From Oikopleura dioica (Eukaryota > Animalia > Chordata), in the NCBI GenBank assembly GCA_907165135.1, contig OU015567.1, forward strand, positions 992,001 to 1,056,000: a DNA stretch of 64,000 bases, written 5' to 3'. The notes under the pieces were generated by a model. It was given only the letters and a program-made list of their open reading frames with translations, had not been told where the DNA came from and searched no databases. The translations under genes and the position numbers were made by a program. This document shows, piece after piece, positions 36,974 through 47,000 of the stretch (its first letter is position 1; each line of letters opens with the position of its first letter).

Positions 36974-38417
36974 ATGCTGTCTTTAGCAGCGGATGCGATC
37001 TTTGCAAATGCGAAGACGAATACTGGCGACACGAAAGTCTCAAAAGCAAGTTTGCCTAACGACAATATTGTCACTCTTCTCGCTGTCGGGTAAGTCGTCA
37101 AAAAGAAAATGAAAAATGTGGAAAATTATTTTTATTTTTCAGCTCGCCAATTTTACTGATTTCTTTTGCTCTCGTCTTTTCTCCAAATCTCGCAACGGAA
37201 AATGGTCTTCGCTGCGCACCAACAAGTCCGATGAAAAATCGATTTTACGTAAGCAAATTTTCGATTGAAAAATTTTGAGTTTTGCAGATGTACAATTATT
37301 GCTGGGAAAACTTCAATCACTACGAGTTGAATTTCACCGAAGATGGGCCGGTTGAAGTTGGAGAGCCGAGATGGATGATTCATCATAAAGCTTTTCCTTA
37401 TGCTTTCTTTCTTTTTGCTTTTATTCTTGGTATGCCAGCGATAAATTGGGTCCTCGCGTACAGTGATAATGTCAAGGTACCCTAACTTCGGCCCTCCTTC
37501 AATTTGAATTATGAATTCTAGCGCCAAGCGACTTATATCATGAGTGGTTTGGAAGAAGCCCTCGCTTTGACTCTTTCTTTGATGAGCGATTTGGTTCAAG
37601 AGAAAAACAGAGAGAAGACTACTGAAAATGTCAAAGACAGAATGAATGGTCAGTTTATTTTCACCTTGATTGAAATTCGGATTTTAGCCATGTTGGAGAA
37701 AAACTACTCGGAAGAAATCGACATCAAATTCAAGGCTTTCAAGAAATATTTGCAGAAGAAAAATTCTAGCACGAAACTCGCCAGGGCATTTATTCAGCGA
37801 CGGATCTTTACCCTTGTGCTTTTGATCCTCGTCGGGATTTTCATGTACGAGATTTATTATTTGGACAATCAGGACTTTTTCAACTGCAAATTGAAGTATC
37901 AGCCGCTTGGAACAGGTAAGAGAAAGGAGAATGCCGTAGAAAAAAGAGGATTTTAGTCGGGGATGGGGTGGATTATGTTAGATGCTCGATTGGAGATGTT
38001 TCGACGAGAAGACTTTTGGTGCAAATATATTTGTGCATTATTGGAACTTGCTTTGTTGGAATCTTTTTTATCACGATTAAAGGTATAAAAATGAAATGAG
38101 TTTTTTAATAAGAATTTATGTTAGATGCTGTCAATGCCCATCGAGCCTTCAAACTCCTCGAAATGATCCCAATTATCGACGAAAATGAAATCCACAACTC
38201 CGCCAATTTCTTCGGTCTGCGAGACATTCACATTCTTCTTTTCCTTGCCAAGTCAAATTTCTCCGAAAACGAGCTGTTCAAGACCTGCCACCGAGCATAT
38301 GAAATGTCGAAAATGACGAATATTCCTTACGAAAACATGATCGAAACGATCGTTTCCTGGGGCGAAGAAGACGAGGCTGATAAGGACGCTGCTGAAGTTC
38401 TTGAATCTCTTCAGTAA
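36974..38417 (+). CDS. PANX1: Pannexin-like (innexin/pannexin family) channel
   Basis: Spliced product: MLSLAADAIF..DNIVTLLAVGSPILLISFA..C..YNYCW..HHKAFPYAFFLF..PAINW..YIMSGLEE..KYLQKKNSSTKL..RRIFTL..FNC..KLLEMIP..LRDIHILLFL. This matches pannexin TM1, YCW, HKFFPY, FIMEELD and C-terminal motifs in order. The symbol is family-level only. An optional extra exon is possible at 38465-38537. Confidence 0.85.
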
Positions 38418-38441: not shown

Positions 38442-40615
38442 TTATTTTGCAAAAGAAACTTCAGGAAAGCGTCGAACATGTCGATCGAGCATGAAGTTAA
38501 GCCAGTTGTAAATTTGTCGAGCACCTTGAGAAACTAAACAAACTGTCAGAAATTTGCGAAAAGGGAGTCCTGCTGGTAATACAGGTATTTACCTTTGAGA
38601 ACTTCGTCAATTTTTATATGAGTTATTTTCAGTCGATTTAGTTGCCACAGTTTTCCGGCGCAGATAGGTCGTTTTCGATGATATCTAGAGGATTTTAAGA
38701 GAAACGATAAGATTACGTTTTATTAAAAAAATACGGAGTTTTATGTCTGATCAAATTTGAGCAATTTTTAAGTACAAGCGCAGCTAATGAAGCAACGATA
38801 ATACGTTGACAATAGGGTTTCTTTATACGGTATATGAGTTAAATTATAAAAAATAGTCTATTTAAACCTCTCAGCATGATCAAATTGCTCCGCCAAATCG
38901 GGAATATCCAGCATCTTGCGACAATGGGTCCACTCTGAGGGCAGGTCGATCATAACAGCAGCGGCACCTGAAACAATGCTCATTTTCAAGCCACTTTCGC
39001 AATGTTGAGAATTAAGAAAATAATACTAGCCATCACCCTTTGTTCTTTGAAGAGAAAAGCGGCCTTCTGAAAAACGCTTTCAGAAGTTACTTCCGTAATT
39101 TTTTATCGAAGTCGATAATGGAGCTTAAGGGACCTGGGCGAGCAGCGCTGAGCCAAACTTCACGCGCTCGCCGTTCTTCTTAGAAATAAGATTTTTTGAA
39201 ATTTTTTTTTGTAAATTATATCTTCTAATCTTAAGCTTTCTGTTCCCATTCTTAGTTTTTCTCTATCGTTCTTGGTTGATGAGCTAGCGAGAAAAAGAGA
39301 AGCCCAACTTCAAAAGGCATCAAGTCTTGCAAACTTTATTTTTTCTTCATGAAACTGGCACCATTGAAAAGCGCGTTAAATTCTGAACAGATCCCACTCC
39401 ATCAGCTAAACTAACTCTGTACTTGCTGGAGATAGAGGCCAGATAAACAAGATAACTTAGCGCCCGCCCAGCGGGAATCATGTCCAGGGAGCCCAAAATA
39501 GCTAAATCGGAGCGTCCAGCCGTGCCGCGACCAGCTGCGCGTGCTAAGTATCTTCGTTTATATGGCCTTACACGCCAACAAGTTCGAATTTAGCTCAGCT
39601 GATGGAGTAAGATTTGTTGAGAATTAAACGGGCTTTTCAATGGTTCTAATTTTATCAAGAAAAAATTAAGTGTGCAGGACTTGATGCCTTTTGAAGTTGC
39701 GCTTCTCTTTTTCTCCCTAGCTCAACAACCGTTAGTGATAGAGAAATTCTGAAAATCGGAAGAGAAAGCTGAAGATTCGCAAATTTGATTTGCAAAAAGA
39801 AATTCCAAAAAAATCATATTTCTAAGAGAAGCTATGCGCCCGTGAAGTTTGGCTCCGCGCTGCTCGCCCAGGTCCCTTAAGGGGGACAGGCCAGATAGAT
39901 GATAAAAAAAACGCTACTTTGGAACTTGTTGACAATTTGTCAGGTCAAGTCAAGGAGAAAAGATAGACAGATTTGTTGACCAAAATTTCGATTGGAAGGA
40001 TTAAGGGTATCCCTATCGTTTTATCATGATTTCGACCGATCTAATTCAACTAACCAGCAATTCTTTGGACTGTATCTGGAGGGCATTTGAAGCTCTTTAG
40101 CTCTAGAATAGCTGCTTTTGAAATTCTCGGGCGCGTGATTTTCTGCTTTTTCTGAACTCGAACTTTTGAGCGTCGTTTTTCTTCTTCGATTTCTTCTGGC
40201 TGGACGAGGGAGAAATCAACACAAGACCGCGACCTTCAAATTGACGAAATTGGGGCCGAAAATGGAGATTTTTTTATACCTTTCAAAGCTCTCAATCGGC
40301 GATTTCTGATAATTCTGCAAGTCCTTGACCCATTTCGCAACGGAACTCGCCGCTTTAGAAGCTTTGCAAACTTTGTCCGGATCTATGTCGACACCTTTCA
40401 ATTTTCTCGTCCGCCGGAGAACTGTTTCGAGATTGTACGTCGCCATTTTTGCTTGGAGATCATTGACATTCGAGAGCAAATGGGATCTGGAAAAGAAGAA
40501 TAAACAGGAAGGAGAGGAAAGAACTTACATGTTATCAGGAGTAGGCTTGAAGCCCAACAAGATCACGAGGGCCCTCAAGACCTCGTTGACGATTCCGGGT
40601 GGCTTGCAAAGAGAT
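38442..40615 (-). CDS. Motor-less protein with two tandem dynein-stalk microtubule-binding-domain (MTBD)-like repeats; 5' end unresolved
   Basis: Six exons (40615-40529, 40486-40234, 40199-40055, 38967-38868, 38684-38593, 38533-38442) join through phase-consistent GT-AG introns. Repeat 1: RSLCKPPGIVNEVLRALVILLG..IDPDKVCKASKAASSVAKWV. Repeat 2: ISKAAILELKSFKCPPDTV..EWTHCRKML..IDEVLKVSQGARQIYNWL. Confidence 0.7.
39129..39876. mobile_element. 748-bp Kolobok-like foldback element in an intron of the MTBD-like gene
   Basis: TTAA|GGGACCTGGGCGAGCAGCGC ... GCGCTGCTCGCCCAGGTCCC|TTAA. A perfect 20-bp terminal TIR is followed by about 300 bp of degenerate inverted homology. Confidence 0.9.
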
Positions 40616-41910
40616 CTAAGAAAATGTTACTGATGAGTACAAACATCTATACCTTGGTCATATTTTGTTACTGTTGTCAACCAAGAATGTTTTTTTTTAA
40701 GTCCCCAACGAAAGTATTTACTAACATTTTATGATCCCTTGTTTTTAAATTTTTCTAGAAAAATTTCATTTTGAAATAAGCAACTTTGCCTACTGAGATT
40801 GAGGAAAAAGTGAGTAAGAAAAGTAAATTTTAAATTGATATCAATGCAGCTTATCACTTCCGTTACCAGGAAGCCGAGCTCAATCTTTTGATTATCTCAA
40901 ATCGTAAGCTACTCAATAAATTTCCCAAAAAGAATTTCGTAAATCAAGTTCTCGAAATAATGAGGAGAAACCATAATCAGACTATTTCAACCATCGGGCA
41001 TACAATTTCTTGATAAAATAACATTGAAAATTTATAAATACCAATTCGCGTAATTGTATAATCAACGCATCCCTCTATATTTACCTTAATTCAATCAAAT
41101 CCCCTCTTGATCCTTCAAAAATTGGTTTGTCCAGCATTCTCATTTAGGAAGAAAACGCTGACTTTCTTTATTGATTTCTTTCTGATTCTCTCTCTTGCTC
41201 TATCTGACACGAAAAAATCAAATGTTTCTTGAAAGTGAGAAAACTTGTGTTTGCGGTTGTGGCAATTGTGGCATAAGTACGGCAGCCAAGTGTTCTTTTT
41301 TGAATTTTCTTGTTTGCGCTTGTTGACAACGCGCCAGGCTAGATTCTTTCTGACTCTGACCAAGATCGCCCTCACTTCCAAGCGCTCCAGAACGCAGCTT
41401 TTTTTTGTAAAGAAGCTTGAAGTTAGACTCGTTCGGCTAGGGTAGGAACAACGAAGAATGCTACTAGGAAGTTATGACGCCCTAATTGGTTTCAGAAGAA
41501 AAGCCAAAAAGCCGGAATCCATGGAAACAAAACCACTTTTGGCTAATTTTCGCATTTGATCTTCGCCATTCTTTTCTACTGAATTAAATTGAAAGAAAAG
41601 GAAATAAAAATACTGACAATAATATTTCGCCTTCAAAATTATTTGAATAATACACATACCATTTGCTGGTGATGAAATGAACCGAAACAAAGGAGCTCTT
41701 CCGCGAAGTTTTACGAGCTGATCTGGCTCATCTCTCATAATTCTCGACAAAAGCGTCGAAATCACGCGTCTCTTCTTCAGAGCAGAGAAGCCCGATAATT
41801 ATGCTCGACGAAGAGCTTTTCAGAATAAGGGTTCAAATCATTCTTCTTTCCGAAATGATATCGAGCCTTTTTGAGCCCTAAAAAGACGAATAAATGACTT
41901 CATTTTCGAG

Positions 41911-44003: not shown

Positions 44004-47000
44004 TTACATTTGAGAGATTTTGAGCTGAGAAAGAGAGCTCAGCATTGGCTTAAATTCGTCGAGCTTTTTTGCTGGGGAGGCCGAGGCGGCTCGCTCGAAT
44101 CCTGAGTCTTCAGACAGCTCTGAAGGTCCAGGGCTGGTCTTTTTAGAGGATCAATATTTTAACGGTAAGTTTCGGTTATAGAAATATCTACAGAGGGCAT
44201 TCTGGACAACAAAAGTTTTCATCATGATTTCAGCCCTCTGATTGGTCGAAATTTTGGGCCAATGTCAAACTGCGATTCTTCGTTCGCGACAAACTTTCAT
44301 GGAAAATCCATGAGAAAAATAAGCCAATCAGAGGCCTGTTTTCGGCCTACCGGCCAATCAGTGGCCAGTATCGTTTACGGGAAAAATTTGTCGCGAACAA
44401 AGAATCGCAGTTTGACACTTTCCCGAATTTTTTTTCCTTAAAATTTGAGAAATCTGTGGAAAAATAATCGAGATCCCCTCCTGACACGAAAGATCTGGCG
44501 TTTCTAGCCCCGATTCCGCAGATGGCGAGGAGCTTTCCTCAAAATACCCATCCGAGGAATCAGAAACTATTTCGGCGCTCCTGCTTGCTTTCGGAGCCAC
44601 TTTTTCGAAGGCCGAAGAATTCGACTTTCGCTGCTTTAGTGCGGACTTTTTTGGCTTCATCTGAAAAATATGAGTATTTTTCTTAATTGTCTAGTTTTAC
44701 CTGATGATTGATGAAGGGTTTTTCGGGCTCGAAAACAGTCATAGGCTGCTGCTGCGGAACTGGAGTAGTTGACCTCTCGACCAACCCTGAAATCGAGTCC
44801 AACATGTCGAGACAAGTTTGCATAATCTTCATTGTCGTGTCCAGCTCTGGTGTGTTTTGAGGGCCGTTCTAAAGAGTGATCTGTTTATTTCTGGCGATGG
44901 TCGAATGGCGCGCACCTGACGTAAGATGTCTTCTTGGGCACGAAGTGCTTGCTGGAGATTGGCCTGAGAGCTTCGCAGCTGAGACAAAGTGAACACTTGT
45001 TGTTCAAATTGGGCGGGAGCATCTTTAAGGATATGGTTATCTTTGACTATAGCTGAAAAATTAAGGACCCCCCCCCCCGTCAGCTTTTCGAAAAATCAAA
45101 TTTCGGAATTTTAAAATTTTGACCCCGGAAATGGATTTTACGGGTCAAAAAACTATTCTCAGACTTCATTTTGGGATGGTGTCTGGAACCGACAAAAAAA
45201 TTCGACAAATTTTGCGTGGGCGGCTATTCGGCTGCTGATTGGCTGGTTTGCCAAATCCAGACTTCTGATTGGTTGAAAATTTCCACGCAAAATTTGTCGA
45301 AATTTTTTGTCGGTTCCAGACACCTCCCCTTCATTTTTGGGGGTTTATCTCGACTCCTTCACCCCAAAAATCCCATTTGAAAATTGAATTTTTCCCCAAA
45401 AATTGACGAATTTGCCCTTATTTTGGCAATAATATTGATTTTTCTTCGTCAAAAATTCCTCTCATCAAGTTTTTGAAGAAATTTTAACCTGAGGACGCGT
45501 TCAGAACCAAAAATTTGGTGTTTTTTGAAAATTTCCATTTTTCGAATGAAAAAGCTAGCGGGGGGGTCTTTAAAGTAAAAAGACATTACCTCCAGCATTG
45601 CTCATCGTCGCAACTGATCCAACAGGGCTCATAACCCTGTTATTTATAAAACTAGAAGACCTCGTTGAGGGATAATTGGAGGAGACTGGTGACATCACGG
45701 GCGGAGCTAAATATGGAACGTATATAAATATTTTCATTCATCAATGCATCCAGGAAAATGGCGACACTCGCGCATTTTAACCGGAACAAGTTCATTTCAA
45801 CCATGTTTTTTTACCTGATTCGAAACTATGCACGGACATGTCATAGTTTGAATAGAATCCTTGGGCCGAGCTTGGCCGCTGCGGACGAGCAACATTCATT
45901 TGGTCTGAAAAAACACCGCACATTTAACATTTAACATTGAGGAGCATTTTTTTCATTTTAACCCGTTCACGCATTTTTGCCAAAAAGTTGGTTTGACGGA
46001 AATTTCTGAATATGATATTTTCATTAGAAAAAAGCACCGATTGGAAATCAAAAATGACCAAAAAATTGGTCAAAAATGCGAAAACGGGTTAAAAAAGCGA
46101 GCAAAATAAGATTCAATAGACATTGATTTTGTTTGAAAACTTACCATAATTACTATGTTGTTGAGCGATTGGTTGTTGTTGAGAGAATTGCCCTCCAATA
46201 ACGCTGGAGGGGCGATGTTGATTTTGCTTTTGGAATTGATTGAAAGGATTGGAGGTAAAGGTTGGAATTGAGCTTTTTAATGGTTAATTTTATTTTTCCC
46301 AAAATTCGTCTCTTTGAAGTGACGTATATTTTCCTTTGTCAAAAGAAAGGATGGAATTAACTCGTGGCGGACTAACATCCGCCCTCGGTTCAATAATTTT
46401 CTCAAATACTGTGGTTTCCAAGATAAAAAGAAAATTTAACCATTCCTGAGCGATCCTTGTCGTTGAATCGTGGCGCCGCGAGTGGCTTGGTTCTGCTGCT
46501 GACTTTGGAATGCCGCAACTTCGTAATTCGACAGCGTTGAATTGCTACGTACTGGGCGCCTAAAGTTCGGCACCGCCGGGGTAGAAGACAAGTTCATCTA
46601 AAAAGGAAAAATTAATTTTTGAATTTGAAACATGATTTTTACCTGAGAGCCGCCAAATTGGCCGTGAACCGATCTGGGCTGGAACATTTGATAATTGGCT
46701 GGCGCTTGATTTTGATGATTTTGAGAGTGTTGATTTTGGAAGTGGCAGAGTGAGGCGTTGCTGCCTGATCTCGTGAGATTCGGCACGCGGTGCTCTGAGT
46801 AGTTCGCGGAAGGGGTGAAATCCCCGTTTTGGTTGTAGGTTCCATCGGCAGTCACGAGTTTTGGGCCGTATTGGCCATTTTGCTGGTTTTGGGTTAGAGA
46901 ATTTTTTGTTCCAAAAAAGATAAGCTGCCCAAAAAAGCGCTCAATTAATAGCGTCATATTTTGACGGGAAAAATAATCCTCTCTAATCCCTTTCCTTTTG

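Follow-up and report, generated by a model that had tools for sequence, protein, structure and literature searches.

Can the part of a dynein that holds the microtubule exist as a gene of its own? In dyneins, how firmly the microtubule-binding domain (MTBD) holds the microtubule is controlled by way of the stalk, at a distance of about 15 nm. The question is raised by a small protein-coding unit in a 64,000-nt stretch of Oikopleura dioica DNA (the window, within which all positions here are given; the locus is on OKI2018_I69 chr2), which an earlier note had read as a stand-alone protein with two dynein MTBD-like repeats and no motor. The gene occupies the minus strand from 41143 to 38442 in seven exons. 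Its coding sequence in the window translates exactly to a public protein of 269 amino acids (P0001; CAG5109624.1, 'Oidioi.mRNA.OKI2018_I69.chr2.g4143.t1'), whose record has neither a functional name nor a precomputed Pfam domain. The analysis described here leads us to consider it probable that this is an intact gene for two tandem MTBD-derived domains, and that the product is a small microtubule-associated protein acting on the dynein footprint. This is a new architecture for a known domain, in a gene that is already in the public annotation but is unrecognised there as dynein-related.

A phmmer search of the PDB with the full-length protein aligned residues 10-109 with the whole MTBD of DNAH6 (chain residues 2786-2889; E=1.8e-7). 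With a profile made from four repeats, two from each of two lineages (alignment A2), DNAH6 was matched at E=3e-11, and the first 55 matches listed were all dynein entries, with every dynein class represented. Exon 3 alone found dynein heavy chains in the PDB, at the H5-H6 position (E=0.017). Pfam applied to the exons one by one gave nothing useful, single exons being too short, and phmmer of the 28-residue exon 2 against the PDB gave no match. The two repeats also resemble each other: an alignment of one half of the protein with the other covers about 110 residues and scores 59, compared with 27.5 +/- 4.8 for shuffled sequences (none of 1000 reached 59), and profile-profile comparison of repeat 1 with repeat 2 by hhalign gives P=0.0023 over 92 columns. 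When repeat 2 was searched alone, dyneins made up all eight phmmer matches and three of six profile matches, in register; its sequence, taken by itself, is weakly MTBD-like.

The earlier note had based its identification on two copies of a pattern, E-L-x-S..PP...W...V-x-K-x-S...W, taken as the signature of the dynein MTBD. Both copies are indeed present in the joined frame, and their attribution to dynein is borne out by the profile match (E=3e-11) and by the fold of repeat 1 (Z up to 13.4, described below). In alignment A2, all four repeats retain the H1 motif E-L-R/K-S..PP as well as the H6 motif V-x-K-x-S...W, which is invariant, and a single register across H1-H6 is common to every alignment. 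A2 also has an invariant proline at both ends of every repeat. The dynein MTBD is bounded by 'universally conserved prolines' (10.1101/590786); those of the repeats lie near them, with the C-terminal one about one helical turn earlier by count, the residue equivalence being approximate. Both repeats lack the flap, a 13-19 residue insertion between H2 and H3 that is found in DNAH7-type dyneins and is absent from cytoplasmic, I1/f and DNAH6/g dyneins (10.1101/590786); DNAH6 aligns with them over about 102 residues, compared with about 117 for DNAH1/7/12. Judged by sequence, both repeats appear to descend from a dynein MTBD, and they are closest to the flap-less DNAH6 or inner-arm type.

The fold of repeat 1 was modelled with AlphaFold2 from a four-sequence alignment that contained no dynein sequence. 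In the resulting model (predicted local distance difference test score, pLDDT, 79.9; predicted template-modelling score, pTM, 0.74) the helices fall into the H1-H6 pattern. Searched against the PDB with Foldseek, it returned dynein MTBDs as all of its first 34 matches (TM-score by query 0.58-0.71, E about 0.02). Superposition on solved dynein MTBDs, which the earlier note had put forward as a check, gave a clear match in VIA-align, with Z of 10.7-13.4 to 11 solved MTBDs and 5.2 and 2.5 for the next folds; for most of the 11, the root-mean-square deviation was 2.2-2.5 Å over 104-113 of 114 residues. An Atlas fold search with the same model gave TM-scores of 0.76-0.84 to clusters of PF12777, the Pfam MT family, and ESM-Atlas features point to PF12777 clusters too. 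The predicted structure shows repeat 1 as the six-helix MTBD bundle.

Two observations made alongside concern possible homes of an MTBD-like fold outside dyneins. One is chain L of PDB entry 9ya2, an intraconoidal-microtubule protein of Toxoplasma, which is a weak match at Z 5.2; the second, in the ESM-Atlas, is a cluster from oomycetes with a length of about 398 residues, some of whose members are assigned to Impact_N and some to PF12777.

If the repeats come from a dynein, is there a motor at the locus? The earlier note had held that there is no P-loop and that the gene cannot encode a dynein heavy chain, and this stands: the Walker A pattern GxxxxGK[ST] was not found in any of the six frames between 38400 and 42450. 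Because a complete open reading frame (ORF) of 269-275 residues is carried on a 904-nt mRNA, and because there is no Walker A, the protein has no motor. We found neither the AAA+ ring of a dynein heavy chain nor the coiled-coil stalk (CC1/CC2); H1 of repeat 1 has about 10 residues ahead of it, and about 15 follow repeat 2. Between the repeats is a lysine/arginine-rich linker of about 40 residues that contains prolines. The whole protein is 31 kDa, with an isoelectric point (pI) of 9.7 and a net charge of about +17, and both repeats and the linker are each basic in both lineages.

The mRNA just mentioned belongs to a different lineage of O. dioica. In a word search, P0001 matched an orthologue of 273 residues (P0003), 74% identical, encoded by a 904-nt Logan contig of run ERR9850573 (L001). 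Its ORF is open throughout 57-878; an in-frame TAA lies upstream, 18 nt from the first ATG, and the contig ends in a run of A. A JGI metagenome contig of 5331 nt (L003) is a genomic copy from the same lineage: aligned separately, the exons of L001 match it at 99-100% identity, with the same seven exons and intron positions as in the window. The 5' end of L001 is contiguous with the ATG exon in this genomic DNA, implying that there is no exon further upstream. Collinearity between L003 and the window extends from about 41300 to 36900 and takes in the convergent neighbour. A third O. dioica variant is represented by its exons 2-5 on an ENA metagenome contig (L002).

RNA reads from three oligo-dT runs, with overhangs of orthologous sequence, span the exon 1-2, 2-3 and 4-5 joins. 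The reads align to exons 2 and 5 at 90-95% likeness and must therefore come from the P0003-type lineage, not from the Okinawa strain. Two of them bridge the join from 41085 to exon 2; those on exon 2 cover 40541-40594 and continue into orthologous exon 3; and those on exon 5 have loose ends at 38970 that match the end of orthologous exon 4. A single-cell RNA run gave no reads aligned at the locus. As to the 5' end and splice junctions, which the earlier note had left to RNA evidence, exon 1 has been found, and the reads and the polyadenylated mRNA contig of another lineage agree. The protein is complete at 269-275 residues, and the gene stands alone with its own transcript.

Orthologues, which the earlier note had suggested looking for, are present in other O. 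dioica lineages; outside the O. dioica species complex, none was found in protein and metagenome searches, whose scope did not extend to unannotated larvacean genomes. An exhaustive HMMER search with exon 3 alone recovered its own model, P0001, and P0002, with no dynein at E <=0.001 at that library size. We rejected P0002 as a relative: it has 321 residues in four near-identical reverse-transcriptase-like segments, and its E=1.3e-4, spread over four stretches, looks like a repeat artefact. A word search with the four-repeat profile returned a 67-residue exon call from the third O. dioica variant and nothing else, with no dynein fragments.

The gene is also under constraint. Comparison of the window coding sequence with L001 by the Nei-Gojobori method gave, for nonsynonymous (dN) and synonymous (dS) divergence over the whole coding sequence, dN 0.16, dS 1.37 and dN/dS 0.12; by part, dN/dS is 0.10 in repeat 1, 0.14 in the linker and 0.11 in repeat 2. 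That the gene is under purifying selection and is not a pseudogene follows from the dN/dS of 0.12 with silent sites near saturation, from intron positions shared with another lineage, from the near-identical blocks next to the promoter, and from RNA reads across the junctions. The possibility of a decayed dynein fragment, which the earlier note had named as fatal to its reading, was checked with the same dN/dS and does not apply.

How does this protein compare with known systems? Its nearest counterpart is the MTBD of DNAH6 (with the Chlamydomonas counterpart in 8glv), which is the best match of repeat 1 and of the joint profile and shares the order H1-H6, the H1 and H6 motifs and the lack of a flap. 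However, the DNAH6 heavy chain, at >4,000 residues, has one MTBD on an antiparallel coiled coil, gated by an ATPase ring, whereas here there are two in 269 residues with no stalk or ring, and the identity of the repeats to a DNAH6-type MTBD is only about 20-35%. Doublecortin is a microtubule-associated protein with two tandem globular microtubule-binding domains. It offers an analogy, in that both would have two small lattice-binding modules, a flexible basic linker and avidity (predicted for the protein described here), but the two are not homologous and have unrelated folds.

Engineered chimeras of seryl-tRNA synthetase and MTBD provide a closer precedent: cut from its motor, the MTBD still folds and decorates microtubules (10.1101/590786). 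Our model of repeat 1 superposes on the chimeras 3ERR, 6RZB and 6RZA with Z of 12.2-12.8. The chimeras, however, keep 12 heptads of stalk in the high-affinity registry, whereas in the natural protein H1 is preceded by about 10 residues, and the H6 aromatic is followed within 5 residues by a proline. DNAHX is a non-motile atypical dynein that is a full-length heavy chain (PMC11785096), and DNAH12, also a full-length heavy chain, is described as lacking the MTBD (PMC11949491). They show that dynein modules can be lost or disabled independently in evolution, but those proteins keep the ring; the O. dioica protein is the converse, with the MTBD kept and all else gone. A literature search, with most subscription journals outside its coverage, found no description of a natural protein made of dynein MTBDs alone.

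What might such a protein do? The earlier note had suggested a bivalent microtubule binder, a cross-linker or a dynein-site competitor, with a possible link to cilia; all of these are candidate roles. To judge by the best matches, the probable donor was an inner-arm dynein of DNAH6 type. We envisage that the MTBD part alone of an axonemal dynein gene was copied, that a tandem duplication followed, and that the result was kept under purifying selection. In solved structures the MTBD contacts the tubulin intradimer groove by H1, H3 and H6, and such MTBDs are 'permanently primed', only H1 moving on binding (10.1101/590786). Each domain of the O. dioica protein may dock in this groove through the same three helices. 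Since there is no stalk whose registry could switch, the protein would bind constitutively and not under the control of ATP, and the two heads and the basic linker would add avidity. The outcome would be a protein that occupies the dynein footprint on the lattice, stabilising or masking it. The pI, the charge and the invariant H6 motif are consistent with microtubule binding, and domain homology leads us to predict, with moderate confidence, that the protein does bind microtubules. It is possible, although we consider it doubtful, that the whole of a larger claim holds: that this is the first natural protein of dynein MTBDs alone, stalk-free, ATP-independent and two-headed, and that it masks or stabilises microtubules (for example, axonemal doublets) against dynein.

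Several results weigh against the interpretation of the gene as one for a two-headed, MTBD-derived microtubule binder. A full-length AlphaFold2 model, made with two sequences, has a pLDDT of 35, which is low confidence and includes repeat 2. The match to Pfam MT (PF12777), against which the earlier note had proposed to check each repeat, was a partial one: residues 152-182 align to positions 100-128 of the 344-position model with E=6e-4 and 19.3 bits, under the gathering cut-off of 24 bits. Most of that model is stalk, which is not present in this protein. Repeat 2 alone matches dyneins weakly (E=0.048-0.08), and repeat 1 is without the usual tryptophan and basic residue in the H2-H3 region (TPDNISHLL compared with PDW..AK in DNAH6). 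The RNA evidence is from a lineage that is 90-95% alike, with none from the Okinawa strain itself. The predicted function is drawn from domain homology at about 20-30% identity. Finally, the high affinity of dynein depends on stalk registry, and a stalk-less MTBD might sit in a weak state.

The most serious alternative accepts the gene as real and conserved but proposes that the fold taken from an MTBD now serves to bind something else than the microtubule lattice, such as free tubulin, another acidic protein or nucleic acid. The loss of the affinity-tuning stalk fits this idea, as do the changes at typical dynein MTBD positions, such as the H2-H3 loop of repeat 1, and the strong divergence of repeat 2, and the high pI would suit any acidic ligand. 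Nevertheless, purifying selection is spread evenly over both domains, the H1 and H6 signatures are kept in all four repeats, and microtubule binding is the only known activity of the MTBD fold; we regard re-use for another partner as unlikely. Much less probable is that the locus is a decaying fragment or pseudogene of a broken dynein heavy-chain gene. That idea draws on the fact that the domain otherwise occurs inside heavy chains of roughly 4,000 residues, but it has to contend with an intact ORF in seven GT-AG exons, a dN/dS of 0.12 at saturated dS, intron positions shared with another lineage, a polyadenylated mRNA with a closed ORF, and a conserved proximal promoter.

Could the exons instead be one portion of a dynein gene that is larger, or is split, its other parts lying elsewhere and being connected by cis- or trans-splicing? 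Trans-splicing is used in O. dioica, and split dynein genes are known in other eukaryotes, which supplies a precedent. However, the 904 nt of the L001 mRNA include its own start, an upstream in-frame stop, a stop codon and a poly(A) tail, the genomic DNA shows no break between its 5' end and the ATG exon, and tandem MTBDs without a coiled coil cannot form a stalk tip; these data contradict the idea, and we judge it still less probable than a pseudogene. Least probable of all is that the resemblance to an MTBD is a chance likeness of small helical bundles. The silence of Pfam on single exons, and a Foldseek E of only about 0.02 for so small a domain, are what such an explanation can call on; against it are the profile E of 3e-11 with its nearly pure dynein match list, the gap in Z between 10.7-13.4 and <=5.2, and the constant register from H1 to H6. 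A pair of MTBD-derived domains on the dynein footprint is thus the interpretation that we prefer.

If the protein is what we propose, it is a natural experiment, both on what an un-gated MTBD does and on how a piece of a giant motor gene becomes a new gene. Were it to bind where dynein does, the cell would have its own means of competing for dynein sites or of protecting them, and we know of no description of an endogenous regulator that competes for or protects them. More immediately, an unnamed public protein without a Pfam domain gains a function-bearing annotation.

The exon structure, collected with the other features in the table, corrects the earlier one. A chain of six exons had been proposed (40615-40529, 40486-40234, 40199-40055, 38967-38868, 38684-38593 and 38533-38442), ending at the TAA at 38444-38442. 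All its borders are GT-AG and it forms one frame of 255 codons, and to this extent it was sound; its exon 2/3 junction was wrong, and it missed the first exon. The 34-nt intron that it used there, 40233-40200, is in frame, but the public model and the mRNA of the other lineage splice elsewhere, at an intron of 46 nt, 40279-40234 (donor 40280|40279, acceptor 40234|40233). A start at ATG 40661 spliced to 40602 was likewise ruled out, reads and orthologous mRNA using the exon at 41143-41085. Exon 1, also present in L003 and L001, codes for M(RM)LDKPIFEGSRGDLIEL and the first two bases of a split R codon, and so supplies the '...GDLIELR' part of the first E-L-R-S motif. Its donor is AAG|gtaaat at 41085, and an in-frame stop just upstream of the ATGs closes the frame. 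At the other end of the gene, the stop codon sits within an AATAAA signal.

Table. Positions of the gene, its domains and nearby features in the window
Feature	Position	Strand	Content
Coding sequence of the public model	41137-41085, 40615-40529, 40486-40280, 40233-40055, 38967-38868, 38684-38593, 38533-38442	minus	Seven exons
Promoter-proximal blocks	41228..41310	minus	Aligned to L003 about 640-750; two GCAAACA cores
Exon 1	41085..41143	minus	In-frame ATGs at 41143 and 41137 (public-model start)
Exon 2	40529..40615	minus	(R)SLCKPPGIVNEVLRALVILLGFKPTPDN, H1-H2 of repeat 1
Exon 3	40280..40486	minus	H3-H6 of repeat 1 (...VDIDPDKVCKASKAASSVAKWV...); ends ...ESFE and first two bases of a split R codon
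Exon 4	40055..40233	minus	Basic linker SRSCVDFSLVQPEEIEEEKRRSKVRVQKKQKITRPR, then H1 and start of H2 of repeat 2 ISKAAILELKSFKCPPDTVQRIAG
Exon 5	38868..38967	minus	H2-H4 of repeat 2 AAAVMIDLPSEWTHCRKMLDIPDLAEQFDHAE; covered by RNA reads
Exon 6	38593..38684	minus	H5 region of repeat 2
Exon 7	38442..38533	minus	H6 of repeat 2 (VSQGARQIYNWLNF...) and stop TAA 38444-38442
Repeat 1	40297..41125	minus	P0001 residues 5-110; six-helix MTBD-like domain; exons 1-3
Repeat 2	38463..40130	minus	P0001 residues 151-263; more diverged MTBD-like domain; exons 4-7
Foldback (long inverted repeat)	39124..39881		758 bp; within intron 4; outside coding unit

The promoter-proximal blocks lie just upstream of the inferred transcript start, which was placed from the mapping of L001 on L003, and they are near-identical between the two lineages despite saturated silent sites in the coding sequence. 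Among them are GTCAACAAGCGCAAACAA and another GCAAACA, each of which contains a RYAAAYA core of forkhead type. These cores provide a lead to putative FoxJ1-like (ciliary) regulation.

The earlier note had placed the locus between a pannexin gene and a PDZ gene on the opposite strand. The pannexin holds: the convergent plus-strand neighbour ending at 38417 is pannexin-like, all 24 of its PDB matches being pannexins (best E=0.003). The PDZ neighbour is unconfirmed, Pfam on two exon pieces having found nothing. The stop of the pannexin-like gene (38415-38417, plus strand) and that of the MTBD gene (38444-38442, minus strand) are 24 nt apart, each beside its own AATAAA, implying that the two 3' untranslated regions should overlap in antisense.

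Upstream, L003 has a divergent neighbour at 81-359, on the minus strand of the locus; this ORF contains the motif FPGSGNT and starts within about 450 nt of the gene. This ORF weakly matches the window at about 45040-45110, about 4 kb away and beyond the presumed PDZ gene. With the neighbour at about 450 nt in one case and about 4 kb in the other, the upstream neighbourhood appears to differ between lineages. Within the gene, the foldback in intron 4 is 78% self-complementary over 770 nt and occurs once in the window. Intron 4 is 1087 nt long in the window, compared with about 245-255 nt in L003 and L002, and the foldback therefore looks like a lineage-specific insertion.

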